DNA of 64,000 nt from Thalia democratica (taxonomy: Eukaryota). The notes beneath the pieces are model-generated. The model was not told the origin of the DNA and did not search any database. It worked only from the letters and a program-made list of their open reading frames with translations. Position numbers and translations under genes: made by a program. Location: NCBI GenBank assembly GCA_965202585.1, contig CBDBBG010000038.1, positions 1-64,000 of the forward strand. Direction: 5' to 3'. The first letter of the stretch is position 1. Every line of letters begins with the position of its first letter. This document shows positions 5,172-61,547 of this stretch, piece after piece.

Positions 5172-5850
5172 TTTGTGCAAAAAAAAAACGATGCTCACCT
5201 TTTATAACTTAAGACGAACTTTCTATAAAAAATAAATAGTCATTCTTATGGAAAAAATTAGAAAATTTTGACTCTCTTGAGGTAGCTTACTTAGTAATTT
5301 TTGATAAAAAAAAAGACCTTTCGTCTTTCGACGAAAAGCCTTTAGAAAAAAAAAAGGGAGAAAATGAAAAAAAAAATGGCGCAAAAAAGCCCCCGACGAG
5401 CCGCGGCCGCGGCTCGTCGGGGGCTTTTTTGCGCCATTTTTTTTTTCATTTTCTCCCTTTTTCTCTACCAACCGTTCCTTTAACCTCACATTTTTTTCTC
5501 AATCCCCAATTTTTGAAAAAGCAATCCTCCCCCGCTTACTTATAATTGTTTTTTCGAAGCTCCTGCTTCACTTTCAAAATATTTCGCTTCTACTCACCTC
5601 TAACTTTTATAGCGACTATGAGAATAAGCCGCTTTTTCACATGTACTATTTTGAGTGCTTCGCCTTCGCATTTTCTAATATTTCGCCTACTCCGCTTCAG
5701 TCGCCCCGGCCGTAGCTTCACCTCTAGAAATGCTTTAGTTAGTATCACTCAAACGTACTTTTAACTGGGCTGAATCATGTCAGAGCTCGTTCATATACTG
5801 CTACGCCTTCTGAGAGAGCGGCTTCTTTGCTCAACGGCTTTTAAATTAAG
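5172..5850 (-). mobile_element. Truncated copy of an unclassified hairpin/palindrome element (partner of 44487..45643)
   Basis: Shares ordered blocks with 44487..45200: atgctcacctt, gactctcttg, gtctttcgac, the long palindrome, gcttcagtcgccccggcc, acctctagaaatgcttta and tgggctgaatcat.tcagagctcgtt. Spacers are divergent. The minus-strand 5' half is missing. Confidence 0.7.
5351..5462. repeat. 112-bp perfect loop-less palindrome (56-bp arms)
   Basis: Arms checked base by base: aaaaagggagaaaatgaaaaaaaaaatggcgcaaaaaagcccccgacgagccgcgg followed by its exact reverse complement. Centre 5406/5407. Confidence 0.98.
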
Positions 5851-6066: not shown

Positions 6067-9000
6067 TCTGCCAAGGTGTACCGTCGTTCGACGGAGCAAC
6101 GACCCACATCGTCCACCAGCGGCAGCCCCAACTGTCCAGTTTCGTCTACGGCGACGTGCTGACGTTTTCCTGCGACGGCCACAAACGGTTTCTTCCTTCC
6201 AACCCGTCGCTGACTTGCCAGGAAAACGGAAGGTGGGGACCCGACACGCTGATTGGCTGCGTTGAAGGTAAGAAAAAATCCCCAAAAGTATGAGTACAAT
6301 CTAATTTGACTTTTTTTTTTACAGATGACGTGTGCCCGTCTCCACCGCAAATCGCCTTTTCCTCGCACCACGACTACTACAGGCCTCCTACTCCGGCAAA
6401 CTCTACCGACTCGATGTGGCTTCCGGAAACGATCCTGCATTACGAATGCAACGATCAGTACCCGATAACCGTTCCCGACGACTTCTTCGGGGCGAAATGC
6501 ACCAGCAGCGGCGCGTGGGTGGGCGTGTATGGAAAATACCATCCTTCGCATGAAAAACCTCACGATATTAAAATGGACGACAAGAAGTTCAAGGAAAAGT
6601 TTGGAAAATGCGTCACTGGTATTTTTAATTTGTAATGTTTAGTCAACCTTTTTGTGTTTATAATTCACTTGAAGTAAGCTAGTAGCAGTTTATAGTTTTT
6701 TAGTTAGAAATTACGTTCGAAAAGGTACATGATGTCAATTTCAAGTTATTTTGATTTAAAAACTAAACTGCTACCACCAGTATCTTTGAAATATGTTGTT
6801 CCTAGGTTAACAATTACCACTTCTAATTAAGTTTTTAGCAAGCCTTTATGTTTCCAATTTTAGTTTGTTAAAACTTTTTTTTTACAATTGTCTATATTGA
6901 CCCATGTACGACTCTGTTCTCGGCATGCTTTTTAGAAATTGCGTGGGATTTTTAAAAGGTTTATAAAATAAATTTATTTTAAAAATGCAAAATTTATTTC
7001 AGAGTGTGAGTTTCCCGATCCACATAACTCAATAAAAACTGTGCTAAAATATCTTGAAGTCAATGCGTCATACTCCATACCTTCAGTCGTCAGGTACACC
7101 TGTAACGAGGGTTACCATTGGACGCGGGTGGCAGTTGTGAGCTGTCGCCACCAAGATATTCAAGATAAAGGTCCTTTCGGAAGATTAAACACGCTGCTTG
7201 GATTCTGTGCACCCGGTTAGCTTCTTTTAGTTTCAAAGATAAATTTTTGTAAACAAATTACAAAACAACTGAATGTTTTAAATTAACAACCGTAAGTATT
7301 TATCTTTTCTGTTTTTTAATATGTCGAATAATTTAGTTTTGTTAAAGCCTTTCAGCGCAAAGTATTGCTACTGAAGTTTGTACATAAGTTTAAGGTAAAA
7401 TAAAAAATTACTAATAACTTTTAGCTTGCCCGCCACTCCCATTTTTAATACGAAACGGGGTTAAGCGAGTTATTAGGCAACCGAATCGAAGGAGCTTGGT
7501 TTCCTTCTCGACAACCATACACTACTTTTGCAACCAAGGATTCACTCCGACTTTTGTAAACAGCCGATACAGTTGCAACTACGCTGGGAGCTGGCAAAAT
7601 TCAGAGCTGAACCCTAGGTGTTTGAGGCGTAAGTTGTAACAATATTGATAAGTGTTTGTTTATCAGTCCACCTACTATTTGACTTTAAGGCTGCCCTAAC
7701 CTGCAAAACGATCCGTACGGAAGTCTTGAAGCATCTGTACAAGCTCGGACTAATTTCTATCTGGCCGGTGACCGAGTTGAACTAAGCTGTGATGATGACT
7801 ACGTGTTGAGCTCAGACTTAACAGCTTCAAGTACAACTTTGTCCTGCCTGTCAAACGGAAGGTGGAATTACGAAAAAATACCGGTTTGTATTAAAAGTGA
7901 GTTACGCTAATCAAAAGCTTTTATTCTTATTCTGTTGAACTTTCATTTATGTAAGAAAAAAATTTAAGACGTTCTTTTATTTTGACACCTACACTTGTTT
8001 CAGAAGTTTTTAAGCACTAAAATTAGTGACCTAACAAGTTTAGTTGATTCGTTTTTTCATTAGTTTAAATGCATTTAAACTAATTTTATCTAAAATATAC
8101 TTCTTTTTTATTCAATTTGTTTATTTTAAGGATGTGACGACCCTCCTCGAGGCGACTTTCTAAATTCCACGATAAAGTTCAGTCACGCGCAAGGAGAATA
8201 CTGGTCGTACACCGTAGTGGAGTACGTATGCAAGGAAAAACACACTTTTAAATATCCCGATGAGGACGGGACTCGCACTTGTGAAGGAGACGCAAACTGG
8301 AGCGATGACTCCCCTCCTGAGTGTGCTCCCGGTTAATAAATGATAAAAATATTATCACTATCCCAACAAATACTTTTAGTTATATTTAAATCTGTGTGTA
8401 AGGAATAACAAATAAACTACACTTAACAGAATGTGAAACTCCTCCAGCCGTTGAAGGCTCAACAATTAATATTTTAAACGACTCATTTATTGAATACGAA
8501 TGTTTAGACGGTTATCACATTGACAACGAGTCGAACAGCGTTTTCGAGTGCAGGCTCGGTCCTGTTTGGTTTCCCTTGGAAACTCCTGTCTGTCTAAAAG
8601 GTAAATAAATACCAGTTTTCACTACAAACTGTTTGTTAGACAAATTTCAAGCGTATAAAAAGATCCTCTCAGGCTCAAATCAATTTCCTACTCTAAAATT
8701 TTTTAACGGACTGTTTTTAAGTGTCTTGAAATGTTATCAAATTTATTACGAGTTTATCTTTTCTAGAATGCAACAGCATACCCGTGTACGATAAAACGTT
8801 GCCCGCTGTTGTTACAAAGAATGTTTCAAGGGAGGGCAAGCTTATAACCGGATCATCGTTGAATTTCAGCTGTCAACCAAACTACGGCCTGATCAACTCG
8901 ATATCGAGTTGTGGCCTCGACGGCAGATGGACGCCCGAGATCACGTGTGTTCGAGGTATGTATATTTGCACGTGAAAAAATAAATTAAAAACAACTCATT

Positions 9001-18182: not shown

Positions 18183-18998
18183 TCACCATTCCTTTATGTT
18201 CTTTTCCGAAGAAACGATTTCACCGTTCGGGGACTCCACCCCGGCTGGAAGCGTCGCCAGGTAAACCGGGGCTTCGGCGCCCTGATCGGGCGTCCTCGAG
18301 GCCTTCTCCCCGCCTAAGTCCGTCTTCACCCACCCGGGGCACACCGCGTTGATTATGACGTCACTACCCTTCAGCTTCCTGGCCCACACGAAGGTGAGCG
18401 CGGACATGCCGACCTTGGAAATTCCGTACGGCTGCTCCAGGAACCCGTCCTCCTTGCAAGTCCCCCTCCGGCAGCTCTCGACGAACTCCTCCATCTTCCC
18501 CGTCAGCTCCTCCTCCGTCAGCGTCTCCCTCCTGAAGAACTTTTGGTTCTCCTCGCTCAACTGCTTGAGGTACATGATGTTCAAAGTGCTGGACACGTTG
18601 ACGATCCTGCCACCCTTCCTCACAATAGGAAACAGGATCCTGCTGATGTCGACGGTTCCAGTGTAGTTCGTCCTCACGCAGTCCTCCGCCTTTTTCACTA
18701 GCGGCGTCGCGTCGGTCGAGTTGTACGCGATGCCCGCGTTGTTCACGATGACGTCGATGCCCCCGTACTGTGACGTCATGAAGCTTTTGAGCCGCTCGAT
18801 GCTCTTGACGTCGCAAACGTCCAATTCGTGGAACTGGGGGTAGAGTCCCTCTCTCTCAAGGGTCTTCACCGCCTCCCTGCCGCGCTGCTCGTTCCTGGAC
18901 AGAATGAAGACGTCCCCGTCGAACTTCTGGCATGGCCCCCTGACGATGGCGAGCCCGATGCCCTTGTTGGAACCCGTTACTATGGCAACATTTGTCAT
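18183..18998 (-). CDS. CBR1: Carbonyl reductase [NADPH] 1-like SDR, intronless, 271 aa, copy A
   Basis: MTNVAIVTGSNKGIG (TGxxxGIG), VNNAGIA, IVNVSS, catalytic YGISK, VCPGWVKTDLG and C-terminal ..EW are collinear with metazoan CBR1. The real start is Met at 18998; the AT-rich upstream part of the listed ORF is not coding-like. AATAAA lies just after the stop. The symbol denotes family-level similarity. Confidence 0.93.
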   Translation of the reverse strand: MTNVAIVTGSNKGIGLAIVRGPCQKFDGDVFILSRNEQRGREAVKTLEREGLYPQFHELDVCDVKSIERLKSFMTSQYGGIDVIVNNAGIAYNSTDATPLVKKAEDCVRTNYTGTVDISRILFPIVRKGGRIVNVSSTLNIMYLKQLSEENQKFFRRETLTEEELTGKMEEFVESCRRGTCKEDGFLEQPYGISKVGMSALTFVWARKLKGSDVIINAVCPGWVKTDLGGEKASRTPDQGAEAPVYLATLPAGVESPNGEIVSSEKNIKEW

Positions 18999-20398
18999 AA
19001 TTTTCTCGTGTTTAAAATTTATCTGTCTTAATTTAATTTTTTTGATATTACATTTATTAATAATAATATTTTCATTATTATCATAGTATGTAATACTAAA
19101 TACTTTTAAAAAAAGAAAAGCAAAGTACATGTTGGAAAAATATATTATTTAACATGTTTTACTAACTAGTATGCTAATTAAATGTTTTATACTATTGCTT
19201 CAAAAAGGAACAAAATTTTCAAAAGTACTGTGAATAGTCAGTTTGACTGTTAAAATATTACATCATATAACTTTTTTATGTAAAGTTACTAATTTTCGCG
19301 CGAATGAAAGTTACTATGAATAAAAATTTGTGCATAAAGCATTGAGTCCAATAAACGTGTAAATAAGTGTTTATACTTAACACATACTATTTATTTAAAT
19401 ATGTAAAATTTTGAAATTTATGCTACAACAAAAAAGAGTTGTTTTATTTTTGTATTAAATATAAATATTAAAACAGTTGTAAATAATTTTGAGATTTGTT
19501 CAGCATAGTTAGTTTGTTTTCAGGCAAAATTGTAATCTAACTGAATTTGTAAGTAATATATGTATTTAATAAAACTTTTTACGAACCGTCTCAATTTTAC
19601 ACACAAAACACTTTGAAAGGTCTTCTGTTTATTTATATAAACATTGTAAATCGTGTTTGAAAAATAAACTACGAACTGATGGTAAAACTAACTAAGTTAA
19701 TTAAGTTTGAATTTTGAACAAAAAAAGCTTAGTTTACTTAACTTAAAAACTTGTAAGTCACTTTCATGTATATTTGTTTACAACTATTGTCAATATATAA
19801 AAATGAAAAGGCAGCACTTGTTGGTTATAAGTAAATAACTTAAAACCAGTGAATGTTGGTGGATCATAAACTAAATGTTATGTTTAGTCTTGCTGTCTGA
19901 AGCCAGATTGTCAGTCAGACTTTTCTATACGCTTTACATTAAGACGGGCCAACACTCTAGGGTTTTTCAAATATATAGTTTTATCATTTATGTTAACTTT
20001 GCGTAACAAAACACAAACTAATTTTTTACTAAAGTAAAGTATTATTAAAAGCTTGTAAACTGGACACTATTTAAATTTGAAAAGTAGATACAAATAAATA
20101 AAAATCAGAGTCAATACGCTCAACGATTTAATTATAAAAAATTGATTTACTTTTTGTAACTAAAAAAATATTCACTTAACTAGTCTAAACGGCAAGTGCA
20201 AAATAAATAAGTTGTGAAATTGCCTAGCTAACCAACTTTCGGTTATAAACGAAATAAAAACAAGCAAGTCGATTAAATTAATGTTTCATCTTTTACTGAT
20301 TCTAAAGAAATTTCTGTTGTAATTAAAAGGTTTTTTTTTTTATCAAAAATTTCTTCACAATTTTCCAACACAAACTACTATACAAATGTTGAAAAATA

Positions 20399-26489: not shown

Positions 26490-29400
26490 AAAACTCAAAA
26501 TGAAAGTGTAAATCTGTGCCAACAAGGTATTTGAAATTTAGTTACATAGATTACTATATTTGTGTTTTAAATGATTTTTTTTTAGTTGAGAAAACATAAT
26601 GACACGTACAGAAGTTTTAAAAGTAATTTGCTGATTGGAAATAGGACCAGTAAAAATTCATTTTGAACGAATTTATATTATTGCCATTGTGTACTAATGG
26701 TTAAATAAATTGTTCGTACAGAATGGCTCAAGTAAAACACCTTAATACTAACAGCCTTAAGGAATTGAGCAGTGCTTTTTGGAATCAGTTATATTCATGA
26801 ATGAAGACGATGAAGCACTTTCGGACGCATTCGAGATAATTCACCCTGAAAATGTTGTACCAGGATGCGAAAGAGCGTCGCTGTACATTTACGGTAGGAT
26901 TGGTTAAATACAGAACTTTCCATTAATTTTTAGACAAATTACTTATTTTAAAAAATTATATAGTATGGTCTATTACAAAAGATAACTCTTTATAGTTTTA
27001 AATATATAAATCAAAGTTAACCATTATAACTATTCTGAAATAAGTTAATAACTAATACATTAAAAACATATAATTAAATTACCAGACAAATTAATTAGTT
27101 TTGTATAATTATTTATATTTTGGTTGTTTACAAAAAACTTTTGTTCGCTTTTTCGATTAGTTTTTCTCAATAAAGCAGCAGTATTTTACTGAGTACAGCT
27201 TGATACTTTTTATCTACCTTGCTCTTTATTTCTTTTAACGTTTGTTATTGCTTGTAATCAAGTACTCTCAAATCTACTTACAGGTTTGCCACTTTATCTG
27301 ATAATATAAAAAAACCTGGAGTTTTGAAGAAAAATCACCAAAAAACATGGAATTTTAAACAATTTTTACATGTTATGTCGAAAATTCTTGATATGACGCA
27401 AAAAAATTATCATATAGATTTTTTTTTGGTCATCATCAAATTTAAAAACACATTTAAAGTAGCTTAACCGTATGTTTTCAATGTTTTTATACTATTTAAC
27501 ACAGTTTTTACCTTAAACTCAATTTTAAACTAAAGATAAACCCAAAAATGTGCACTGTTAAAAACCTGGAGGAAATTCTGAAAACCTGGATATTTTGTTT
27601 TAAATAACTGATAACTCGGTACTAACTAACTATTAACTCATCAAGATCCGCCTTTACTGCGTTGTTAAACTAAGATGGTTTTTATATCGTTAGTGATTGT
27701 TTCAAAATTTATTTGTTAAGAAAAAGCCGTTTGCTTATTGATAATGTCAATAAATGATGAAAACTTTGTGAGTAAAGAGTTTAGTTTGTAACTTGTTAGA
27801 CAGTTTATTTCTGAGCTCTAAAGCTTTTTTGATTGAACAAAATTATTTAACTGTCTGAAATTATAATATCTGGAATTTGTTCTGACCCCGGATTTACGGC
27901 TTACTTGAATTTATACATCTATTTTAAGGTATAAATGGTTTAGTTAAATACATTTTTGTGACGTCATAATTCAGATTACTTCCTCAGTTTTCGATATCAG
28001 TCGCTTTCTTTTTTGGACTTGTATCTTTTTTATGGTGTCATATTAACGGTGTTGTTTTTGAGAAAAACTCAAATTATTTTTATTCTATCTTTCAGAAAAC
28101 TCGAAAATGTAAATAATCAAGAATAAGTTTTTGAATAATTCAGTAGTTACACTGGTTTTTGCATTTTTAAACATTTGTCTGTGTTTTTTAATTAACTGTA
28201 ATTGATTATACATACAAGACACGGCTTTATTACATTTTATAAAAATAAGTTTTCTAATTAAAAAAAAATCAAAATGGAAGAATAAATCTGTGTCAACAAG
28301 GTATTTGAGATTTAGTTACATAGATTACTATATTTGTGTTTTAAATGATTTTTTTTAGTTGAGAAAACATAATGACACGTACAGAAGTTTTAAAAGTAAT
28401 TTGCTGATTGGAAATAGGACCAGTAAAAATTCATTTTGAACGAATTTATATTATTGCCATTGTGTACTAATGGTTTAATAAATTGTGTATACAATCTGGC
28501 TTAAGTAAAACACCTTAATACTAACAGCCTGAAGGAATTGAGCAGTGCTTTTTGGAATCAGTTATATTCATGAATGAAGACGATGAAGCACTTTCGGACG
28601 CATTCGAGATAATTTACCCTGAAAATGTTGTACCAGGATGCGAAAGAGCGTCGCTGTTCATTAACGGTAGGATTGGTTAAATACAGAACTTTCTATTAAT
28701 TTTTAGACAAATTAATTTTTAATTAACGTCTAAAACATTAAAATAATATATTATTTAGTATAACCTATTACAAAAGATAATTGTTTATAGTTTTAAATAT
28801 ATAAATCAATGTTAACCATTATAACTATTCTGAAATAAGTTAATAAAAAATACATTAAAAACATATAATTAAATTACCACACTAGATAGTTTTGTATAAT
28901 TATTTATCTTTTGGTTGTTTACAAAAATCTTTTGTTCGCTTTTCGATTAGTTTTTCTCAATAAAGCAGCAGTATTTTACTGAGTACAGCTTGATACTTTT
29001 TATCTATCTTGCTCAATATTTCTTTTTAACGTTTGTTATTGCTTGTAATCAAGTACTCTCAAATCTACTTACAGGTTTGCCACTTAGTCTGATAATATAG
29101 AAAAACCTGGGATTTTGAAGAAAAATCACCAAAAAAACATGAAATTTTAAACAATTTTTACATGTTATGTCGAAAAATCTAGATATGACGCAAAAAAATT
29201 ATCATATAAATAATTTTTTGGTCATCATCAAAAATTTCCATTCAAAATCACATTTAAAGTAGCTTAACCGTTATTTTCAATGTTTTTATACTTATTAACA
29301 AAGTTTTTACGTTAAACTCAATTTTAAACTTAAAATAGACCGAAAAATGTGCACTGTTAAAAACCTGGAGGAAATTCTGAAAACCTGGATATTTTGTTTT

Positions 29401-32400
29401 AAATAACTGATAACTCTGTACTAACTAACTATTAACTCATCAAGATCCGCCTTTACTGCGTTGTTAAACTAAGATGGTTTTTATATCGTTAGTGATTGTT
29501 TCAAAATTTATTCGTTAAGAAAAAGCCGTTTGCTCATTGATAATGTCAATAAATGATGAAAACTTTGTGAGTAAAGAGTTTAGTTTGTAACTTGTTAGAC
29601 AGTTTATTTCTGAGCTCTAAAGCTTTTTTGATTGAACAAAATTATTTAACTGTCTGAAATTATAATATCTGGAATTTGTTCTGACCCCGGATTTACGGCT
29701 TACTTGAATTTATACATCTATTTTAAGGTATAAATGGTTTAGTTAAATACATTTTTGTGACGTCATAATTCAGATTACTTCCTCAGTTTTCGATATCAGT
29801 CGCTTTCTTTTTTGGACTTGTATCTTTTTTATGGTGTCATATTAACGGTGTTGTTTTTGAGAAAAACTCAAATTATTTTTATTCTATCTTTCAGAAAACT
29901 CGAAAATGTAAATAATCAAGAATAAGTTTTTGAATAATTCAGTAATTACACTGGTTTTTGCATTTTTAAACATTTGTCTGTGTTTTTTAATCAACTGTAA
30001 TTGATTATACATACAAGACACGGCTTAATTACATTTTATAAAAATAAGTTTTCTAATTAAAAAAAATCAAAATTGAAGAATAAATCTGTGTCAACAAGGT
30101 ATTTGAGATTTAGTTACATAGATTACTATATTTGTGTTTTAAATGATTTTTTTTAGTTGAGAAAACATAATGACAGGTACAGAAGTTTTAAAAGTAATTT
30201 GCTGATTGGAAATAGGACCAGTAAAAATTTATTTTGAACTAATTTATATTATTGACATTGTGTACTAATGGTTTAATAAATTGTGTCTACAATCTGGCTC
30301 AAGTAAAACACCTTAATACTAACAGCCTGAAGGAATTGAGCAGTGCTTTTTGGAATCAGTTATATTCATGAATGAAGACGATGAAGCACTTTCGGATGCA
30401 TTCGAGATAATTCACTTTGAAAACGTTGTACCAGGATCCGAAAGAGCGTCGCTGTACATTTACGGTAGGATTGGTTAAATACAGAACTTACCATTAGTTT
30501 TTAGACAAATTACTTATTTAAATAACGTCTAAAACATTAAAATAATATATTATTTAGTATAACCTATTACAAAAGATATTTGTTTATAGTTTTAAATATA
30601 TAAATCAAAGTTAACCATTAAAACTATTCTGAAATAAGTTAATAAAACATACATTGAAAACATATAAATAAATTACCACACAAGATAGTTTTGTATAGTT
30701 ATTTATTTTTTGGTTTTTTACAAAAATCTTTTGTTCGTTTTTTCGATTAGTTGTTCTCAATATAGCAGCAGTATTTTAATGAGTACAGCTTGATAACTTT
30801 TTATCTATCTTGCTCAATATTTCATTTTAACGTTTGTTATTGCTTGTAATTAAGTACTCTCAAATCTACTTACAGGTTTGCCTGTTTATCTGATAATATA
30901 GAAAAACCTGGAATTTTGAAGAAAAATCACCAAAAAACCTGAAATTTTAAACAATTTTTACATGTTATGTCGAAAATTCTTGATATGACTCAATAAAATT
31001 ATAATTTTTTAATAAATAAATAAATAATAAATAAATAATAAATAATAAATAATTTTTTAGTCATCATCAAAAATTTCCATTCAAAATCACATTTAAAGTA
31101 GCTTAACCGTTATTTTCAATGTTTTTATACTTATTAACAAAGTTTTTACGTTAAACTCAAATTTAAACTTAAAATAGACCGAAAAATGTGCACTGTTAAA
31201 AACCTGGAGGAAATTCTGAAAACCTGGATATTTTGTTTTAAATAACTGATAACTCTGTACTAACTAACTATTAACTCATCAAGATCCGCCTTTACTGCGT
31301 TGTTAAACTAAGATGGTTTTTATATCGTTAGTGATTGTTTAAAAATTTGTTCTTTAAGAAAAAGTCTTTTGTTACACTGATAATGTCAAAAAATGATGAA
31401 AATATTGTGAGTAAATAGTTTAGTTTGTATTTTGTTAGACAGTTTATTTCTGAGCTCTAAAGCTTTTTTGATTTAACTGTTAGAAATTATAATATCTGGA
31501 ATTTGTTCTGACCCCGGATTTACGGCTTACTTGAATTTCTACATCTATTTTAAGGTATTATTGGTTTAGTTAAATACATTTATGTGATGTCATAGTTCAG
31601 AATACTTCCTCAGTTTTCGATATCAGTCGCTTTCTTTTTGGGACTTGTATCTTTTTTATGGTGTCATATTAACGGTGTTGTTTTGAGAAAAACTCAAATT
31701 ATTTTCATTCTATATTTCAGAAAACTCGAATATGTAAATAATCAAGAATAAGTTTTTGAATAATTCAGTAGTTAAACTGGTTTTTGCATTTTTAAACATT
31801 TGTCTGTCTTTTTTAGTCAACTGTAATTGATTAGACATACACGACACGGCATAATTACATTTATAAACATTAGTTCTGTAATTTAAAAAAAATCAAAATG
31901 GAAGAATAAATCTGTGTCAACAAGGTATTTGAAATTTAGCATGATTTTTTTAGTTTAGAAAACATAATAACACGTACAGAAGTTTTAAAAGTAATTTAAT
32001 GATTAGAAATTAATCATTTTGAACGAATTTGTATTATTGCCATTGTGTACTAATGGTTTAATAAATTGTGTGTACAATCTGGCTCAAGTAAAACACCTTA
32101 ATACTAACAGCCTGAAGGAATTGAGCAGTGCTTTTTGGAATCAGTTATATTCATGAATGAAGACGATGAAGCACTTTCGGACGCATTCGAGATAATTTAC
32201 CCTAAAAATGTTGTACCATGATGCGAAAGAGCGTCACTGTACATTTACGGTAGGATTGGTTAAATACAGAACTTTCCATTAATTTTTAGACAAATAACTT
32301 ATTTAAAAAAATATAATATAGTGTGGTCTATTACAAAAGATAACTCTATATAGTTTTAAATATATAAACCAAATTTAACCATTATAACTATCCTGAAATA

Positions 32401-35400
32401 AGTTAATAAAAAATACGTTAAAAACATATAAATCAAATTACCACACTAGATAGTTTTGTACAATTATTTATTCTTGGTTGTAAACAAAAAACTTTTGTTC
32501 GCTTTTTCGATTAGTTTTTCTCAATAAAGCAGCAGTATTTTACTGAGTACAGCTTGGTACTTTTTATCTATCTTGCTCAATATTTCATTTTAACGTTTGT
32601 TATTGCTTGTAATCAAGTACTCTCAAATCTACTTACAGGTTTGCCACTTTATCTGATAATATAGAAAAACCTGGAATTTTGAAGAAAAATCACCAAAAAA
32701 CCTGGAATTTTAAACAATTTTTACATGTTATGTCGAAAAATCTTGATATAACGCAAAAAAATTATCATATAGAATTTTTTTTGGTCATCATCAAAATTAA
32801 AAACACATTTAAAGTAGCTTAACCGTATGTTTTCAATGTTTTTATATATTTAACGCAGTTTTTACCTTAAATTCTATTTAAAACTAAAAATAGACCGAAA
32901 CATGTGTACTTTTCAAAACTTGGAGGAAATTCTGAAAACCTGGATATTTTTTTTTTAAATGACTGATAGCTCTGTACTAACTAACTAATAGCTCATCAAG
33001 ATCCGCCTTTACTGCGTTGTTAAACTAAGATGGTTTTTATATCGTTAGTGATTGTTTAAAAATTTTTCTTTAAGAAAAAGCCGTTTGTTCATTGATAATG
33101 TCAATAAATTATAAAAACTTTGTGAGTAAATAGTTTGGTTTGTATTTTTTTAGACAGTTTATTTCTGAGCTCTAAAGCTTTTTTGATTGAACAAAATTAT
33201 TAAACTGTCTGAAATTATAATATCTGGAATTTGTTCTGACCCCGGATTTACGGCTTACTTGAATTTCTACATCTATTTTAAGGTATTATTGGTTTAGTTA
33301 AATACATTTTTGTGATTTAATAGTTCAGAATACTTCCTCAGTTTTCGATATCAGTCGCTTTCCTTTTGGGACTTGTATCTTTTTTATGGTGTCATATTAA
33401 CGGTGTTGTTTTTGAGAAAAACTCAAATTATTTTCATTCTATATTTCAGAAAACTCGAAAATGTAAATAATCAAGAATAAGTTTTTGAATAATTCAGTAG
33501 TTAAACTGGTTTTTGCATTTTTAAACATTTGTCTGTCTTTTTTAGTCAACTGTTTTTGATTATACATACACGACACGGCATAATTACATTTTATAAACAT
33601 TAGTTCTGTAATTAAAAAAAAAATCAAAATGGAAGAATAAATCTGTGTCAACAAGGTATTTGAAATTTAGCATGATTTTTTTAGTTTAGAAAACATAATA
33701 ACACGTACAGAAATTTTAAAAGTAATTTAATGATTAGAAATTAATCATTTTGAACGAATTTGTATTATTGCCATTGTGTACTAATGATTTAATAAATTGT
33801 GTGTACAATCTGGCTCAAGTAAAACACCTTAATACTAACAGCCTGAAGGAATTGAGCAGTGCTTTTTGGAATCAGTTATATTCATGAATGAAGACGATGA
33901 AGCACTTTCGGACGCATTCGAGATAATTTACCCTGAAAATGTTGTACCAGGATCCGAAAGAGTGTCGCTGTACATTTACGGTAGGATTGGTTAAATACAG
34001 AACTTTCCATTAAATTTTAGACAAATAACTTATTTAAATAACGTTTAAAACATTGAAATAGTATATTATTTAGTATAACCTATTATAAAAGCTAATTGTT
34101 TATAGTTTTAAATATATAAACCAAATTTAACCATTATAACTATCCTGAAATAGGTTAATAAAAAATACATTAAAAACATATAAATCAAATTACCACACTA
34201 GATAGTTTTGTATAATTATTAATTTTTTGGTTGTAAACAAAAAACTTTTGTTCGCTTTTTCGATTAGTTTTTCTCAATAAAGCAGCAATATTTTACTGAG
34301 TACAGCTTGGTACTTTTTATCTATCTTGCTCAATATTTCATTTTAACGTTTGTTATTGCTTGTAATCAAGTACTCTCAAATCTACTTACAGGTTTGCCAC
34401 TTTATCTGATAATATAGAAAAACCTGTAATTTTGAAGAAAAATCACCAAAAAACCTGGAATTTTAAACAATTTTTACATGTTATGTCGAAAAATCTTGAT
34501 ATAACGCAAAAAAATTATCATATAGAATTTTTTTTGGTCATCATCAAAATTAAAAACACATTTAAAGTAGCTTAACCGTATGTTTTCAATGTTTTTATAT
34601 ATTTAACGCAGTTTTTACCTTAAATTCTATTTAAAACTAAAAATAGACCGAAACATGTGTACTTTTCAAAACTTGGAGGAAATTCTGAAAACCTGGATAT
34701 ATTATTTTAAATGACTGATAGCTCTGTACTAACTAACTATTAGCTCATCAAGATCCGCCTTAACTGCGTTGTTAAACTAATATGGTTTTTATATCGTTAG
34801 TGATTGTTTCAAAATTTTTCTTTAAGAAAAAGCCGTTTGTTCATTGATAATGTCAATAAATGATGAAAACTTTGTGAGTAAATAGTTTGGTTTGTATTTT
34901 ATTAGACAGTTTATTTCTGAGCTCTAAAGCTTTTTTGATTGAACAAAATTATTAAACTGTCTGAAATTATAATATCTGGAATTTGTTCTGACCCCGGATT
35001 TACGGCTTACTTGAATTTCTACATCTATTTTAAGGTATTATTGGTTTAGTTAAATACATTTTTGTGATGTCATAGTTCAGAATACTTCCTCAGTTTTCGA
35101 TATCAGTCGCTTTCTTTTTGGGACTTGTATCTTTTTTATGGTGTCATATTAACTGTGTTGTATTTGAGAAAAACTCAAATTATTTTCATTCTATATTTCA
35201 GAAAACTCGAAAATGTAAATAATCAAGAATAAGTTTTTGAATAATTCATTAGTTAAACTGGTTTTTGCATTTTTAAACATTTGTCTGTCTTTTTTAGTCA
35301 ACTGTAATTGATTATACATACACGACACGGCATAATTACATTTTATAAACATTAGTTCTGTAATTAAAAAAAAATCAAAATGGAAGAATAAATCTGTGTC

Positions 35401-36905
35401 AACAAGGTATTTGAAATTTAGCTTGATTTTTTTAGTTTAGAAAACATAATAACACGTACAGAAGTTTTAAAAGTAATTTAATGATTAGGAATTAATCATT
35501 TTGAACGAATTTGTATTATTGCCATTGTGTACTAATGATTTAATAAATTATGTGTACAATCTGGCTCAAGTAAAACACCTTAATACTAACAGCCTGAAGG
35601 AATTGAGCAGTGCTTTTTGGAATCAGTTATATTCATGAATGAAGACGATGAAGCACTTTCGGACGCATTCGAGATAATTTACCCTGAAAATGTTGTACCA
35701 GGATGCGAAAGAGCGTCGCTGTACATTTACGGTAGGATTGGTTAAATACAGAACTTTCCATTAACTTTTAGACAAATTACTTATTTAAATAACGTTTAAA
35801 ACATTAAAATAATATATTATTTAGTATAACCTATTACAAAAGATAATTGTTTTAGTTTTAAATATATAAACCAAAGCTAACCATTATAACTATTCTAAAA
35901 TAAGTTAATAACGAATACATTAAAAACATATAAATTAAATTACCACACTAGATTGTTTTGTATAGTTATATATTTTTTGGTTGTTTACGAAAAACTTTTG
36001 TTCGCTTTTTTGATTAGCTTTGCTCAATAAAACAGCAGTATTTTATTGATTACAGCTTGATACTTTTTATCTACCTTACTCTTTATTTCTTTTTAACATT
36101 TGTTATTGCTTGTAATCAAGTACTCTCAAATCTACTTACAGAGTTGCCATTTTACCCGGAATTTTGAATAAAAATCACTAAAAAACCTGAAATTTTAATT
36201 AATTTTTACATGTTAAGTAGAAATATTTATCATATGAATAATGTTTTGGTCATCATCAAATTTTTTTATTCATAAACACATTTAAAGTAGTTTTATAGTA
36301 TATTTTCAATGTTTTTATACTATTTAACACAGTGTTTTACCTTAAACTCAATTTAAAACTAAAGATAGACCGAAACATGTGTACTTTTCAAAACTTGGAG
36401 GAAATTCTGAAAACCTGGATATATTATTTTAAATGACTGATAGCTCTGTACTAACTAACTATTAGCTCATCAAGATCCGCCTTTAATGCGTTGTTAAACT
36501 AAGATGGTTTTTATATCGTTAGTGATTGTTTCAAAATTTATTCTTTAAGAAAAAGCCGTTTGCTCATTAATAATGTCAATAAATGATGAAAACTTTGTGA
36601 GTAAATAGTTTGGTTTGTATTTTATTAGACAGTTTATTTCTGAGCTCTAAAGCTTTTTTGACGGAACAAAATTATTTAACTGTCTGAAAGAATAATAACA
36701 GAAATTTGTTCTGATCCCGGATTTACGGCTTACTTGAATTTCTTTATCTAATTTAAGGTATCATTGGTTTAGTTAAATACATTTTTGTGACGTCATAATT
36801 CAGAATACTTCTTCAGTTTTTGATATCTATAGTTTTCTTTTTTGGTTTTAAATCTTTTCTAAGATGTCGTTTTAATGGTGTTGATTTTTAGAAAAAATTA
36901 TTTTC
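26490..36905 (+). repeat. Tandem array, ~1.73-1.83-kb unit, 5 full units plus a nearly complete sixth
   Basis: The marker aatctgtg recurs at 26511, 28285, 30083, 31909, 33640 and 35391 (periods 1774, 1798, 1826, 1731, 1751). Each unit has an exon-like block and a decayed MITE. Unit 3 also has an (AATA/AATAA)n tract near 31010-31050. Confidence 0.97.
28528..28666 (+). other. 139-nt exon-like core of the array unit (also 26755-26893, 30326-30464, 32111-32249, 33842-33980, 35593-35731)
   Basis: Flanked by tactaacag| and G|gtagga in all six units. The phase-0 frame reads PEGIEQCFLESVIFMNEDDEALSDAFEIIYPENVVPGCERASL[Y/F]I[Y/N]G. It is open in units 2, 3, 5 and 6 and has stops in units 1 (TAA) and 4 (TGA). 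No family recognised. Confidence 0.5.
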
Positions 36906-38974: not shown

Positions 38975-40220
38975 AGTTTTTTACCATTATTACGTCATTA
39001 AATTATTTGGAATGAAGCAGGACCTGACCACAAGGATAGCCTAAACCAGAGGTCGCAGTGAAATTAAAAAAAAAATGTTGTCCACACTTAATTAAAAAAT
39101 TATAAAAACAAAAATGGGATAAAATATACTATGATAAAGCACTCGTAAATAGTTTTATTATGAACATTCAAGTTCTTTTGTTTTAAAGTAGTGCTTAATT
39201 TTATCTGCTATTGAAACTGTCGCTCTACAAACGAAATTTGATTAAATGTTTAGTTATACATAAAAGTTAAGTGAGCTATCAATTAATTAGCTTCACGTGC
39301 AAATCTGATGATACTCCTTTAACTTAATAGCTTAATACTCAATAAGAATTAAAAACCGCAGTCATATCATTCCAGGGCAAAACTAGTTTTTTACTATTAT
39401 TACGTCATTAAATTATTTGGAATGAAGCAGGACCGGACCACAATGGTAGCCTAAACCAGAGGTCGCAGTCAAATTAAAAAAAAACGTTGTCGCGGTCCAC
39501 ACTTAATTAAAAAATTTAAAAAACAAAAATGGGATAAAATATACTATGATAAAGCACTCGTAAATAGTTTTATTATGAACATTCAAGTTCTTTTGTTTTA
39601 AAGTAGTGCTTAATTTTATCTGCTATTGAAACTGTCGCTCTACAAACGAAATTTGATTAAATGTTTAGTTATACATAAAAGTTAAGTGAGCTATCAATTA
39701 ATTAGCTTCACGTGCAAATCTGATGATACTCCTTTAACTTAATAGCTTAATACTCAATAAGAATTAAAAACCGCAGTCATATCATTCCAGGGCAAAACTA
39801 GTTTTTTACTATTATTACGTCATTAAATTATTTGGAATGAAGCAGGACCGGACCACAATGGTAGCCTAAACCAGAGGTCGCAGTCAAATTAAAAAAAAAC
39901 GTTGTCGCGGTCCACACTTAATTAAAAAATTTAAAAAACAAAAATGGGATAAAATATACTATGATAAAGCACTCGTAAATAGTTTTATTATGAACATTCA
40001 AGTTCTTTTATTTAAAGTAGTGCTTAATGTTATCCGCCATTGAAACTGTCGCTCTACAAACGAAATTTGATTAAATGTTTAGTTATACATAAAAGTTAAG
40101 TAAGCTATCAATTAATTAGCTTCACATGGCGTCAGGTACAAATATGTTGATACTCCTTAAACTTAATTCCTTAATACTCAATAAAAATTAAAAACCGCAG
40201 TCATATTATTCCAGGGCAAA
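38975..40220 (+). repeat. Tandem triplication of a ~410-415-bp segment that is single in copy A (~1672..2095)
   Basis: attattacgtcatt...gaagcaggacc...ccagaggtcgcag...ccagggcaaaa starts at ~38982, ~39392 and ~39807. Confidence 0.95.
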
Positions 40221-42850: not shown

Positions 42851-44486
42851 ACAATAATTTTATATTCTAAACAACCAAATAGTATGTTAGACGCTTCTGC
42901 TTCAGCAAACAATCAATGTATATGTTATAATACACAACATGAAGGTAATTTTAAAGTAAATAAGATTACTGGTCACTCTTCTTAACCTTCTTAAAACTAT
43001 TGAAAAAATCAACGACCTTATGTAAACACAAAAAATATTTTGTTTACGCTTTTCAATTAAAATTTACTGCTTTTGGTTTGAAGTTAAATATGTGTACAAA
43101 GTGTTTACCTTCTTCTTTTTATTTAAAATTTTAATGCTTGCCTAAGCTTACCAATTTTCTGCTTTAAGATTCTATTTTGATAAAAAAAATTGTTTTGTAG
43201 TAACAACTGTGCCAGAAGTTTTTAAACAATGGACATTAATTGAATTTAAGGATGTTTATTAAAATCATGTCCACTAACTTTAACAACTAACTATAACTCG
43301 TAACAGTTTATACTGAAAAAACTCTATTTATTAAAAATAAGTAAAGTATTTCAACTAAAACATTAAAAGACTTTAAATTAAAACAAAAATGATAAAATAC
43401 AAGCGTTTAAAATTGTTTTAGTATTAATAAAAATACAATGATCTAGCCTACTATCGGTTTGTAATAATAAAATAAAAGAAAGATAATGTATAAGAAGTTG
43501 GTTAATTTTTTTAGCTCTTAGTACAACTTGAATTACTTGCTATTCAAAAAAGTATATGTTAAACTAGAAAAGTAAGGTTTAACATGTTTTTTAGCAGAGT
43601 ACTGCATATACTCACATAAAACTTAAATTAGGGACTAAAATGATGATTATAAATTAAAATGTTAGAAAGCTTAAATAATATTTAAGTATTCTTCCAATAT
43701 ACATTAAAAACGTTTTAGCATTTAAACATGTAAACTTATTACAAGCTAGTTGTAAATTTAATACATTATTAATTTTCTAAGTAACCACATACTTATGTTG
43801 TAAAAGCAAACAATTAATTTACACGTTTTGTAAAAGAATAAGAAAATATTTTAACTGCCTATAACATAACTTAATTGCGTTTAATGACTAGTCACTGTTA
43901 AAAACTGTTCAGAAAAAAGATTATATTATATAAAATATACTAAAAGAAAAGATACCTTTTGTCCATGTCATTAATAAAATAGTCTTTGGTTGAAAGTTTG
44001 ATTTTTGTTTTACTTGGTGTCCAGTTTTGTTCACTTTTTTAAAACCATAATGCTTGCCTAAGCTTAAAAATTTTCTATTACAATTATTTGTTTTAATTAA
44101 ATTAAGCATTTTGTAACAAAAACTCACATATTGGTGAAATTAATAAAACTATAAATTTTTCTTACAAAAATAACTATTACTTCATCTTTAAGCTTAAGAA
44201 AAAAATTTTATAAAAAAAAAATTTCCACATAATAAATACATTCAACATATTAAAATAAGTCTAGTATTGTAACTTAAAATATCAAGTTAATAAATCAAAA
44301 ATCCAAAGATGAAAGTAGGTTTTGAAACATGTAAAATTTTCATTTTATATGTATCAAAGTAATCAAACCTTACTACCATCTTTCTTTTGATTGTATCTTA
44401 TACGAATAAAAATCTGATTTATTATAAGTATCAAAAATAAACAACATTATACTAATAAGGCTATTGATAATTTTGTCAAACAAAAT

Positions 44487-45643
44487 TTGGGCAAAAAACT
44501 ATGCTCACCTTTCGGCGCAACCGCTCAAAATCTAGGGTATAACTTAAATAAAAAAACAGTCATTTACTAAGGGAGACTCTCTTGGGCAAGCTAAAAAAAT
44601 TGGCAAAAAAAAAGGACGTTTGTCTTTCGACAAACGCCCTTGAAATATAATGTTAAAGCCTGAAAAAATTTTGGTAAATAAAAAGGCGAACGTCTTTCGA
44701 CGAACGCCATTGGAAAAAAAAATATTGAAAAAAAATGGGAAAATTTTGGAGCAAAAAAAGGCCCCGAAGCCGCCGCGGCGGCTTCGGGGCCTTTTTTTGC
44801 TCCAAAATTTTCCCATTTTTTTTCAATATTTTCTATCAAACTCTCTCACATTTATAAAATTCATTTTCAACTAATTTTCCAAAAAAACAGCCCTCCCCTT
44901 TTGCTGTAATTTTTTTCTCAAAGCTTCTGCTTCGTTCGCAAAACTCTTCGCTGCACATGAGCTCTGATCGGTAAAGCGACCGTGAGATTCAGTCGCTTTT
45001 TTACTTGTTACATTTTGAGTGCTTTACCATTCGCCATTTCTAGTACCTCGCCTTCTCTGCTTCAGTCGCCCCGGCCAAACCTTTACCTCTAGAAATGCTT
45101 TAATCACCTCATTTCGCACTCGTTCTTTTACTTGGGCTGAATCATATCAGAGCTCGTTTACTGACTGCTACTTCTTGCGAGAGCTTTTACATGGCTTTCT
45201 TCGGACGGTTTCTGCCATTCCTCTCGCTTTACCTTTACTTCTTGCGAGAGCCCGGCTTTTACATGGCTTTCTTCGGACGGTACCTGCCATTCCTCTCGCT
45301 TCACCTTCCCTCGCTACTTATTCAATCAGGTCTGCTATACGACTTCTAACCGCCCAGCTGCGGTCTTTTCACGCCAGCTCAAGTCGACGGCCACGTCGAC
45401 TCAAGCTATATGCCTGCAAAAACACTAACACACAACCCGCCTTCACCACGCCTACCCGCTTAGACGTCTAGGGATTTATTCATTACAGCTTTACATTGTA
45501 AAATCCCTAAGCTGACTAGGTCGTCAGCTCGCTTTCTGGCACACTACAAGTGCCTCTCTTAATAGTGTAACATTAAGCATACGCGTATGATGCCGAAATG
45601 ATCGTGTTGAAAAATTTGGCTACCCCAAGAGAGTCAAAATTTT
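44487..45643 (-). mobile_element. Unclassified ~1.15-kb hairpin-rich element, more complete copy (Helentron/HINE-like hypothesis)
   Basis: Inverted 17-bp motifs at 44575-44591 and 45619-45635 (15/17). Also a 114-bp palindrome, three C-GAAA-G hairpins on the minus strand, a 67-72-bp tandem duplication (45170-45307) and dense hairpins at 45376-45589. No convincing ORF. Confidence 0.6.
44719..44832. repeat. 114-bp perfect loop-less palindrome (57-bp arms)
   Basis: aaaatattgaaaaaaaatgggaaaattttggagcaaaaaaaggccccgaagccgccg followed by its exact reverse complement. Centre 44775/44776. Confidence 0.98.
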
Positions 45644-46534
45644 TCTTTCTTTCATAACATTACATTTTTACTTATATGTATTACTTATTACTTAACTTAT
45701 ATGTGTTGCTTATATTACTTAACTTATATGTGTTGCTCTTTATATTATCATGTTAACCAACTACACTATACACATATATAAGGACACTAAGAGGTACGCA
45801 TTTGCGTAAAGTACGCACTTACATTAATAATGAGTTAATTTATTAAGTATAAATGTGAAAGTTTTTGCCTTTTTCAAACTTAAATAATGTGTAACTATAT
45901 ATTATCTTTACTTTATAGCCAAGTACAGTTTTATTTTCACTTAAACAGCTATGACGTTTTAGTTGTAACAAAAATGGTTCATTTGCATTGCTAGCTGTTT
46001 TAAATATTACAAAGTTACATAAATAAGAAGTTTTTTTTTTAAATTAAAACTGAACAAAGATTTTTTATCACATATACATGTTCCTCCTTATAACAAACTT
46101 AATAACTACATGTGCTTTTATACAACTAACAAGTTTCTAATATAAAATTTTGTTTTATTAATATTTTATTATCTATTAATTAAAAATTAATATTTTATTA
46201 TCTATATGATTTGATTCTTTTAATTTATTTTAATAACATTTTTGAATGTGTGATTATTTTTGAAATTATTATTGTCACTCAGAAAAATTAAAAAAATAAA
46301 TCCTAAAGCTTGTTAGCATTTTCATATTAAATAACTTAAATTTCATAACTTAAAACGTATAAGTTTTCTTATTAATAATTAATTACAAAAGTTGTAAACT
46401 GACTATTTCAATTAAGAAAACATAACCAAACCAGTTTATAAATGATGTATTTTTTTATTAAAAATAAAATTTTGACATGTTATTACTTACTTGTGCTTTG
46501 TGTCATGTTATTCTTATCATCTTCAACAGGGAAA

Positions 46535-46630
46535 ATGTCCATATTCAATTTGCGTCCTCACTGCGGGGAAGCGGGTCCGGCTCACCGCCTTGTGACCGGT
46601 TTCGTGCTGGACGAAAACATCAGTACTTCT
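46535..46630 (+). other. Candidate first coding exon of the CCP-lectin gene (copy B only)
   Basis: Isolated GC-rich block, ATG...TCT|gttaag (96 nt, phase 0), compatible with the phase-0 start of the 43-nt exon 47074-47116 (LSVLHLISCFSAKR). The peptide is a poor signal peptide, so the assignment is tentative. Confidence 0.3.
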
Positions 46631-47073
46631 GTTAAGAAAAGTTTGCCCTGTTTGTATGTATATTGTATAATATTATCAGTGAACTTTCATAAATATTGCT
46701 GAATTCTACAAATAAAAACAGTTGTGTATTGTTGACATTTTTTTAATTTTCTTTAATGTTAAATATTTTAAAACGATTACTCATCTAAAACATGTGGATT
46801 TATAATCTTTTCATTGGATAAAACATAATGAAAGTAGTTGCTTCCTTTTGTTAATAAGTAATTTAATTTTTGTATTTTACCCTAAAAAGAATTCAGAGAG
46901 AGCTCTTTTTTATTTTTATTTTTATTTTTATACGAATTTCATTCAATTATTAAGATTATGTATATTAACCTATATAAAAACTACATTTATTTTAACAAAA
47001 CACTAATGCGCATCTATTTTTAAACTTTGTTTTAATTTTTGTTTTATTTAATTTTTCTGTACATGTTTTTCAG

Positions 47074-59328: not shown

Positions 59329-60144
59329 TCACCATTCCTTTATGTTCTTTTCCGAAGAAACGAATTCACCGTTCGGGGACTCCACCCCGGCCGGAAGCGT
59401 CGCCAGGTAAACGGGGGCTTCGGCGCCCTGATCGGGCGTCCTCGAGGCCTTATCCCCGCCCAAGTCCGTCTTCACCCATCCGGGGCACACCGCGTTGATT
59501 ATGACGTCACTACCCTTCAGCTTCCTGGCCCACACGAAGGTGAGCGCGGACATGCCGACCTTGGACATTCCGTACGGCTGCTCCACGAACCCGTCCTCCT
59601 TGCAAGTCCCCCTCCGGCAGCTCTCGACGAACTCCTCCATCTTCCCCGTCAGCTCCTCCTCCGTCAGCGTCTCCCTTCTGAAGAACTTTTGGTTCTCCTC
59701 GCTCAACTGCTTGAGGTACATGATGCTCAAAGTGCTGGACACGTTGACGATCCTGCCACCCTTCCTCACAATAGGAAACAGGATCCTGCTGATGTCGACG
59801 GTTCCAGTGTAGTTCGTCCTCACGCAGTCCTCCGCCTTTTTCACTAGCGGCGTCGCGTCGGTCGAGTTGTACGCGATGCCCGCGTTGTTCACGATGACGT
59901 CGATGCCCCCGTATTGTGACGTCATGAAGCTTTTGAGCCGCTCGATGCTCTTGACGTCGCAAACGTCCAATTCGTGGAACTGGGGGTAGAGTCCCTCTCT
60001 CTCAAGGGTCTTCACCGCCTCCCTGCCGCGCTGCTCGTTCCTGGACAGAATGAAGACGTCCCCGTCGAACTTCTGGCACAGCCCCCTGACGATGGCGAGC
60101 CCGATGCCCTTGTTGGAACCCGTTACTATGGCAACATTTGTCAT
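59329..60144 (-). CDS. CBR1: Carbonyl reductase [NADPH] 1-like SDR, intronless, 271 aa, copy B
   Basis: TGSNKGIG, AIVRGLCQ, NNAG, YGMSK, CPGWVKTD and NGEFVS all match the CBR1 consensus. 816-nt CDS from Met at 60144. Confidence 0.94.
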   Translation of the reverse strand: MTNVAIVTGSNKGIGLAIVRGLCQKFDGDVFILSRNEQRGREAVKTLEREGLYPQFHELDVCDVKSIERLKSFMTSQYGGIDVIVNNAGIAYNSTDATPLVKKAEDCVRTNYTGTVDISRILFPIVRKGGRIVNVSSTLSIMYLKQLSEENQKFFRRETLTEEELTGKMEEFVESCRRGTCKEDGFVEQPYGMSKVGMSALTFVWARKLKGSDVIINAVCPGWVKTDLGGDKASRTPDQGAEAPVYLATLPAGVESPNGEFVSSEKNIKEW

Positions 60145-61547
60145 AAATTTCTCGTGTTTAAAATTTATCTTTCTTAATTTAAAATTTTTAGATATTACAT
60201 TTATTAATAATAATATTTTCATTTATTTATCATAGTATATAATACTAAATACTTTTAAAAAAAAGAAAAGCAAAGTACATGTTGGAAAAATATATTATTT
60301 AACATGTTTTACTAACTAGTATTCTAATTAAATATTTTATACTATTGTTTCAAAAAGGAACAAAATTTTCAAAAGTACTGTGAATAGTCAGTTTGACTGT
60401 TAAAATATTACATCATATAACTTTTTTATGTAAAGTTACTAATTTTCGCGCAAATGAAAGTTACTATGAATAAAAATTTGTGCATAAAGCATTGAGTCCA
60501 ATAAACGTGTAAATAAGTGTTTATACTTAACACATACTATTTATTTAAATATGTAAAATTGTGAAATTTAAGTTACAACAAAAAAGGGTTGTTTTATTTT
60601 TGTATTAAATATAAATATTAAAACAGTTGTAAATAATTTTGAGATTTGTTCAGCATAGTTAGTTTGTTTTCAGGCAAAATTGTAATCTAACTGAATTTGT
60701 AAGTAATATATGTATTTAATAAAACTTTTTACGAACCGTCTCAATTTTACACACAAAACACTTTGAAAGGTCTTCTGTTTATTTATATAAACATTGTAAA
60801 TCGTGTTTGAAAAATTAACTACGAACTGATGGTAAAACTAACTAAGTTAATTAAGTTTGAATTTAAACAAAAAAAGCTTAGTTTACTTAACTTAAAAACT
60901 TGTAAGTCACTTTCATGTATATTTGTTTACAACTACTGTCAATACATGAAAATGAAAAGGCAGCACTTGTTGGTTATAAGTAAATAACTTAAAACCAGTG
61001 AATTTTGGTGGATCATAAACTAAATGTTCTGTTTAGTCTTGCTGTCTGAAGCCAGATTGTCAGTCAGACTTTTCTATACGCTTTACATTAAGACGGGCCA
61101 ACACTCTAGGGTTTTTCAAATATATAGTTTTATCATTTATGTTAACTTTGCGTAACAAAACACAAACTAATTTTTTACTAAAGTAAAGTATTATTAAAAG
61201 CTTGTAAACTAGACACTATTTAAATTTGAAAAGTAGATACAAATAAATAAAAATCAGAATCAATACGCTCAACGATTTAATTATAAAAAATTGATTTACT
61301 TTTTTGTAACTAAAAAAATATTCACTTTACTAGTCTAAACGGCAAGTGCAAAATAAATAAGTTGTGAAGCTGCCTAGCTAACCAACTTTCGGTTATAAAC
61401 GAAATAAAAACAAGCAAGTCGAGTAAATTAATGTTACATCTTTTACTGATTCTAAAGAACTTTCTGTTGTAATTAAAAGGTTTTTTTTTAATAAAAAATT
61501 TCTTCACAATTTTCCAACACAAACTACCATGCAAATGTAAAAAAATA

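Follow-up and report, generated by a model that had tools for sequence, protein, structure and literature searches.

A family of perfect loop-less palindromes in an rDNA-like cassette of Thalia democratica: mirrored changes point to upkeep of symmetry by arm-to-arm templating

Introduction

The ampliconic palindromes of sex chromosomes and the inverted repeats of plastid genomes have arms that measure kilobases to megabases, contain spacers and are maintained by homologous recombination. Far shorter symmetric structures are found among the bidirectional intrinsic terminators of bacteria, in which a GC-rich stem is preceded by an A-tract and followed by a T-tract. A hairpin and T-rich arrangement also follows the 25S rRNA of yeast, where termination by Pol I includes the cleavage by RNase III of a hairpin directly behind the large-subunit rRNA. 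The protelomerase telRL sites, the concatemer junctions of poxviruses and the terminal palindromes of parvoviruses are loop-less or nearly so, are ~50–150 bp long and are regenerated from one arm.

Palindromes that are long and lack a loop are considered unstable, and it has long been asked how a stem can remain perfect in the face of random mutation. Template switching is able both to create perfect hairpins and to maintain them (PMC8794818, PMC5453318), and in yeast it is stimulated by high transcription (PMC3820800). The human PATRRs are near-perfect AT-rich palindromes of hundreds of base pairs that extrude cruciforms; they differ in symmetry from allele to allele and show deletions at the centre, which is also the site of breakage (PMC1851657, PMC3197554, PMC4940405).

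Here, we describe a family of loop-less palindromes in an animal genome, that of T. democratica, starting from two members in a stretch of 64 000 nucleotides (positions 1–64 000 of contig CBDBBG010000038.1, here C47, assembly GCA_965202585.1), which is referred to below as the window. The assembly comprises 801 Mb in 1833 contigs, some of which are of chromosome scale.

Sampling and scoring of family members

An 18-nt motif of the cassette body was used as a marker of the family. It has 120 exact matches, on contigs C1 to C7 and on smaller contigs, and these mostly stand in arrays with a spacing of ~20–45 kb. A total of 108 family loci were fetched, and 99 motif-carrying copies were scored for symmetry. 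Symmetry was counted in each copy outwards from the centre rather than from the MAFFT alignment, because the gaps in the alignment are asymmetric and the centre of one type stands a column out of register.

Two palindromes in the window

A direct scan for arms of at least 14 nt identified exactly two palindromes in the window, and a repeat search agreed. They occupy equivalent points of a ~41 kb tandem duplication (Table 1) and lie between genes of a large tandem array. An earlier note on this DNA had described them as a pair of perfect palindromes that have diverged from one another, and this description holds: both are symmetric, their centres differ in the way that was reported and the arms of type A and type B are 69% identical (43 of 62 aligned columns). 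The flanks adjoining the two palindromes are 72% and 67% identical, close to the value for the arms. The type A palindrome of the window recurs letter for letter on contig C5, and that of type B recurs letter for letter on contigs C5 and C173.

In type A an 18-bp GC-rich core is flanked by A6/T6, then by a short GC block and A10/T10. In both palindromes the 18-bp core bears T6–7 on each strand, with further T-runs beyond, so the proposal that the structure would read as a hairpin plus oligo-T in both directions is borne out at the level of its GC core and T-tracts. As a single strand each palindrome folds at about −68 to −72 kcal/mol, compared with about −21 kcal/mol for shuffled sequences (z of about −15). 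A simple terminator scanner omits both palindromes because it requires a loop of 3–8 nt. No match to Rfam at gathering scores was obtained in the window; the sub-threshold matches on the palindrome, which include models of plant miRNA precursors, are hairpin-shaped only.

Table 1. Features of the two cassette copies in the window, in order of position.
Feature	Position	Strand	Remarks
28S rRNA patch at the R2/I-PpoI site	5270..5286	+	17/17 identical to own 28S
GAAA-tetraloop hairpin followed by T-run, terminator-like	5315..5340	-	Resembles hairpin just after real 28S, E ~1e-4
Perfect loop-less palindrome, type A	5351..5462	no strand	56-nt arms, 0 mismatches
Conserved GC-richer cassette body, copy 1, truncated	5463..5845	-	Family 18-nt motif at 5694-5711
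GAAA-tetraloop hairpin module 2, copy 2, followed by T-run	44612..44641	-	
GAAA-tetraloop hairpin module 1, copy 2, followed by T-run	44685..44708	-	
Perfect loop-less palindrome, type B, homologue of type A	44719..44832	no strand	57-nt arms, 0 mismatches
Cassette body, copy 2, from promoter-like piece to palindrome	44833..45553	-	
Promoter- or 5' ETS-like piece	45554..45611	-	81% identical to real rDNA, 59 aligned positions
Second 28S patch, opposite orientation, just upstream of promoter-like piece	45619..45635	-	One base different

The family across the genome

Within 50 nt of the centre on each arm, 74 of the 99 scored copies are perfect and nine have exactly one mismatch. The palindrome is deleted, disrupted or lost in 16 of the 99, several of the deletions being symmetric about the centre, which agrees with the expected instability of long palindromes. 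The marker motif lies to the right of the palindrome, ~287 nt away from its centre, and wherever the palindrome is present in the sampled copies this distance is 265–287 nt. The sequences on its two sides are conserved in all copies but differ from each other, and where the fetched flanks reach far enough the palindrome travels with large array units. Among the sampled loci, no palindrome was found outside the context of the cassette, and no solo palindromes with target duplications were seen at unrelated sites.

The perfect arms are 52–60 nt in length across the family, and in every type they stop at one and the same position of the alignment. The arm end is an inherited boundary, at which the complementarity of the flanks stops, and the fixed span of ~56 nt that had been put forward for the copying mechanism does not agree with these lengths. 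An outer mismatch at position 53 is common to ~26 copies of one array and has remained uncorrected, so correction is not fast at the edge of the palindrome.

Mirrored changes

The perfect palindromes comprise 18 distinct haplotypes. A minimum spanning tree that joins them requires no fewer than 57 mirrored changes, of which 22 are transversions, 11 are transitions and 24 are indels, and all of which are present on both arms. Many of the 24 mirrored indels fall in A/T runs. Mirrored differences are also seen between neighbouring units of single arrays (the C5 and C6 arrays). Across the family the copies diverge by ~20–30%, each staying almost perfectly symmetric, and the two arms of a copy differ by only ~0.2% (nine mismatches in ~4150 paired positions). 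Between copies, the divergence of the arms follows that of the flanks, with values for arm and flank in successive bins of 0.097 and 0.131, 0.189 and 0.180, and 0.215 and 0.222.

The mode of change was compared with that of the adjoining GAAA hairpin, which served as a control, in the same 15 representatives. The inner 40 pairs of the palindrome contain no G·U pair and change almost only on both sides, whereas the control hairpin has 21 G·U and seven broken cells among 195. In copy L003, the left arm is that of one haplotype and the right arm that of the adjacent haplotype, and the copy itself stands between these two in the array. A caught intermediate and a central crossover are the two possible readings. 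In the small sample of single-mismatch copies in which the changed arm is readable, it is the left arm in four and the right arm in three, and one copy is a hybrid.

Such a pattern could in principle result from selection only, if the stem is required either in the RNA of both strands or as a DNA site that has to be symmetric, each mirrored pair then arising by independent compensatory mutations with no templating. The greater conservation of the palindrome relative to its flanks within arrays (see below) is in line with this explanation, as is the ordinary RNA-type covariation of the neighbouring hairpins, and the absence of G·U pairs matches the ban on wobble that would apply if both strands must fold. 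The relative numbers of changes are the reverse of what it predicts, however. At ~0.2 changes per site, the chance of an independent complementary hit at the mirrored site is a few percent, so single mismatches should far outnumber mirrored pairs, and nine were observed against at least 57. A route through wobble pairs would favour transitions; the transversions exceed the transitions two to one and make up two thirds of the mirrored substitutions. The 24 indels among the 57 mirrored changes, in A/T runs, also count against selection only. Arms that diverge as fast as their flanks at depth are likewise unexpected for a slow two-step compensation under selection. Because the lack of wobble could equally stem from selection on both strands, the weight of the argument is placed on the mirrored transversions, the indels and the rates. 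Independent compensatory mutation cannot produce this pattern, and arm-to-arm templated copying is needed. Selection as the sole cause is unlikely, if slightly less so than the other alternatives considered below. The earlier suggestion that symmetry is templated from one arm is thus upheld by the mirrored transversions and indels and by an arm divergence that tracks that of the flanks.

Constraint within arrays

Within one array of 24 copies, none of 104 palindrome sites is variable, compared with 208 of 2632 sites in the flanks. In the other arrays, 2.6% of palindrome sites and 6.1% of flank sites are variable. Unbiased copying between arms would alone predict the rate of the flanks, so there must be a further influence, either purifying selection or a bias towards restoration. 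Hypermutation near the palindrome was considered as a cause of the divergence between types A and B and was rejected, as variation within arrays is not raised there and is if anything lower.

The cassette and its likeness to rDNA

The palindrome stands at the terminator end of a cassette of ~1.1 kb that is rDNA-like and non-coding. On the minus strand the order of parts is a 28S patch, a promoter-like piece, the body, the palindrome, one to four modules of a GAAA hairpin with a T-run, and an inverted 28S patch. The G·U pairs of the GAAA modules work on the minus strand only.

The real rDNA unit is located on C141 (L109, L113 and L114) and measures 15.8 kb, with two 5S genes in its spacer. Directly after its 28S gene there is a 14-bp GAAA-tetraloop hairpin with T9, followed by three 13-bp hairpin/T-run repeats. 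The first of these hairpins is matched in the same orientation by a profile of the cassette (nhmmer, E ~1e-4), and the promoter-like piece matches positions 7812–7869 of C141, ~470–530 nt upstream of the 18S gene (E = 4.6e-6). As judged from the sequence, the layout after the real 28S is like that of an intrinsic terminator and suggests that rDNA-type units may end in hairpin/T-tract modules.

The order found in the real terminator, with a stem, a T-run, a short GC block and a second T-run, recurs in the palindrome and is mirrored onto the other side, so that a hairpin with a T-tract is found on both strands; its shape would fit that of a bidirectional hairpin/T-tract terminator. The arm also bears a weak resemblance to the reverse complement of the real terminator tail (E = 0.056). 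A palindrome with arms of at least 14 nt is absent from 12.4 kb of the real rDNA spacer, and the idea that the palindrome is part of that spacer was therefore rejected; it is specific to the dispersed cassettes. Derivation of the arm from a GAAA module was also considered and dropped, since on reading the alignment the similarity is found in one cassette type only.

The same stem could have another function, namely as an RNA hairpin of 56 bp that gives rise to small RNAs by dicing (an hpRNA- or miRNA-like source) instead of acting as a terminator, its symmetry being kept in the manner that we favour below. A perfect duplex of 56 bp with no loop would suit Dicer or RNase III ideally, and the cleavage by yeast RNase III after the large-subunit rRNA provides a parallel. 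We nevertheless consider this reading unlikely: no Rfam family reaches its threshold and the weaker matches to plant miRNA precursors reflect only a long hairpin, the stem consists mostly of A–U pairs outside the core, and the T-tracts on both sides together with the stacked hairpin/T-run modules fit termination better.

Several further observations concern the cassette itself. Exact or near-exact 17-nt copies of 28S sequence border it in inverted orientation. The 28S of this genome reads TTGAGG at the R2/I-PpoI/Pokey site (L109:2617-2633), where TTAAGG would be expected. In L069 (708-758; C1 ~41.90 Mb) there is a second perfect palindrome with 25-nt arms and a 1-nt spacer, which consists of two inverted 28S patches with their T/A runs and is apparently a new inverted duplication within the cassette. 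The cassette body contains a hairpin of 13–14 bp (L051:290-321, L052:284-315, L090:36-67 and others), which in L051 lies ~545 nt away from the centre of the palindrome. The three haplotypes of this hairpin are all fully paired and differ by stem changes that are mirrored. Relative to the other units, copy 1 of the window is missing ~1.7 kb (at 5845, compared with 45265-46949), and with it the promoter-like piece and the 28S patch next to that piece. The cassette of copy 1 is thus truncated, yet the palindrome is still perfect.

Array units and their exchange

The window is sparsely coding, with only seven ORFs of at least 150 aa, among which Pfam identified a short-chain dehydrogenase and gave weak Sushi and C-type-lectin matches. 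Spliced exons on the plus strand from ~6063 read as Sushi domains from their sequence, the Pfam match being weak, with a still weaker C-type-lectin-like match. The intronless dehydrogenase ORFs (18183-19130 on the minus strand, 315 aa; 59329-60222 on the minus strand, 297 aa) occur once per array unit amid AT-rich non-coding stretches. Tandem repeats are also present inside the array unit, with six copies of ~1.77 kb (26528-36833) and three to four copies of ~415 bp (39062-40190). The window contains no tRNA genes. An origin from a bacterium, a phage or an organelle was considered and rejected in view of the 801-Mb genome, the spliced exons and the lack of tRNA genes and Rfam matches. A GC-richer block of 8 kb at 6–14 kb was considered as rRNA and rejected; it has no Rfam match and contains the plus-strand exons.

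Cassettes of types A and B are 73% identical and alternate in one array on C5 (65.70–66.12 Mb), the units of which are otherwise 91–98% identical. Along the cassette (window 43021-45700), the identity to a neighbouring unit of the C5 array climbs from 76% to 92% and then to 98%, the last step lying just beyond the 28S patch. The divergence of A and B inside units that are otherwise 91–98% alike indicates that the cassette segment has its own history, by ectopic conversion or by movement. The steps in identity suggest ectopic conversion tracts that may end near the 28S patch.

This separate history leaves some room, if little, for a process driven by breaks. One such process would be a programmed self-renewal, in which the palindrome is regularly cut at the centre or extruded and is rebuilt from one arm via a hairpin-capped intermediate, driving the exchange or amplification of cassettes between arrays, in parallel with Pol I-type units that have an intrinsic-like termination. 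The cutting could be performed by, for example, a structure-specific nuclease, or could be connected with the bordering 28S-site patches. We regard this as a speculative reading with little probability.

A related explanation, which the earlier note had put forward, is that one arm is rebuilt through a hairpin-ended or rolling-hairpin intermediate each time that the element is copied during mobilization, with a span set by the machinery. The interspersion of types A and B in an array of otherwise closely alike units would be accounted for in this way, as would the concentration of palindrome change between arrays rather than within them. The position and the surroundings of the palindrome speak against it. 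It keeps its constant distance from the marker motif and moves with the array units, it lies inside the cassette and never at an end of it, and its arms of variable length have inherited boundaries. Both flanks are homologous across arrays, and no target duplication flanking the palindrome was found. ORFs and Pfam reveal no gene for a replication initiator, resolvase, protelomerase, Rep/NS1 or transposase in the 64-kb window. Moreover, the mirrored differences between neighbouring units of the C5 and C6 arrays are differences between units born of segmental duplication, not of replication of the element. Regeneration by mobilization is accordingly improbable.

Traces of a DNA hairpin

Five copies (L007, L008, L067, L090 and L093) have deletions that are symmetric about the centre of the palindrome. 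The ends of these deletions are self-complementary repeats (CCGCGG, GC, AT, GAATTC and an A/T run), as expected from a polymerase skipping across the base of a hairpin. The composite copy L003, the 25-nt-arm palindrome of L069 and the mirrored changes of the body hairpin are read as further traces of this kind.

In two further places an insertion of 650 bp is found exactly at the centre (L010:851-1500, C47 ~103730-104379; and L009, C423), although the sites at ~104 kb of C47 and on C423 may be one region that was assembled twice. The palindromic octamer GCGGCCGC is duplicated, with one copy on each side of the insertion. The 650-bp piece was considered as the interior of a palindrome element and rejected in favour of a secondary insertion with its own 8-bp duplication. 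A subfamily with 650 bp between its arms might otherwise recall a foldback or MITE-type transposon that has lost its interior, so that its two terminal inverted repeats now meet head to head. This origin is very improbable, as the insertion has its own target duplication and occurs in two sampled places only, and the palindrome itself is always inside the cassette with no flanking target duplication.

That assembly or polishing made the arms symmetric is very unlikely: reads lying wholly inside the palindrome could be placed in either orientation and so blur asymmetric sites, but the 18 perfect haplotypes are each consistent within their array on seven chromosome-scale and several small contigs, the flanks are unique and differ on the two sides, both window palindromes recur letter for letter on other contigs, and the presence of copies with a single asymmetric mismatch means that the assembly does not force symmetry.

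Maintenance of the palindrome

We consider it probable that the palindrome is an inherited part of the cassette and a putative two-way terminator, the symmetry of which is kept by arm-to-arm templating at the level of DNA together with purifying selection. This explanation builds on the observed family, its mirrored changes, its context and the footprints of a DNA hairpin. The palindrome would be a fixed component, passed on with a dispersed rDNA-like non-coding cassette in array units of ~20–45 kb.

For the molecular route of arm-to-arm copying, we infer the following. When one arm mutates, the palindrome, once single-stranded, would snap back during replication or on a strand exposed by transcription. 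The nascent strand may then copy the opposite arm, by a template switch of the kind known as quasi-palindrome correction, or repair may act on the stem of the hairpin. The outcome would be that the change is either erased or mirrored. Purifying selection for pairing of the stem on both strands would add to the upkeep of symmetry. The function that we infer is that of a bidirectional transcription stop, or of a hairpin for 3'-end processing, that would end the mini-unit.

The ~100 copies with mirrored changes, together with the few caught intermediates and the deletions at the hairpin base, form a natural series in an animal germ line. The series allows arm-to-arm templating to be weighed against selection, with the adjoining RNA-selected hairpins as an internal control.

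Comparison with known systems

The hairpin telomeres are a parallel in size and in regeneration from one arm. They are situated at genome ends or junctions, and a dedicated enzyme is encoded nearby. The palindrome described here is internal, its two flanks are unrelated and there is no such gene in the window. PATRRs are few, are without known function and are not known for histories of mirrored substitution; in contrast, the present palindromes have a core rich in GC, always occupy the same place in a conserved cassette and are, within arrays, more conserved than their flanks.

In the gene conversion of large palindromes, the arms evolve in concert and the divergence between copies or species is far above that between arms, as is also found here. 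The arms in the present family are only 52–60 nt long and have no spacer, and are below the usual length for recombination. With intrinsic terminators the palindrome shares a hairpin plus oligo-U reading on both strands, and it adjoins modules like those that follow the 28S of the same genome. It differs from the bacterial terminators in belonging to an animal genome and in a stem that runs ~35 nt past the core into A/T tracts, and the likeness is one of sequence.

The closest mechanism is quasi-palindrome correction, or short template switching (the Ripley model; PMC5453318, PMC8794818, PMC3820800), in which one event copies an arm onto the other arm, as is proposed here. Events of this class leave perfect stems, 'compensatory' changes of several bases that pass through no wobble intermediate, and arms of extended identity; they are stimulated by transcription and depend on the direction of replication. 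The palindromes show both mirrored complementary changes without wobble and divergence between lineages with identity within copies. The earlier note had seen in them a candidate for an undescribed system, a claim that goes too far given that template switching at quasi-palindromes is already known to perfect and maintain hairpins (PMC8794818, PMC5453318, PMC3820800). The described cases are mostly short looped stems of a few to tens of base pairs and single events, whereas the present case is a 112-bp loop-less family with dozens of mirrored events over ~100 paralogous copies in one animal genome.
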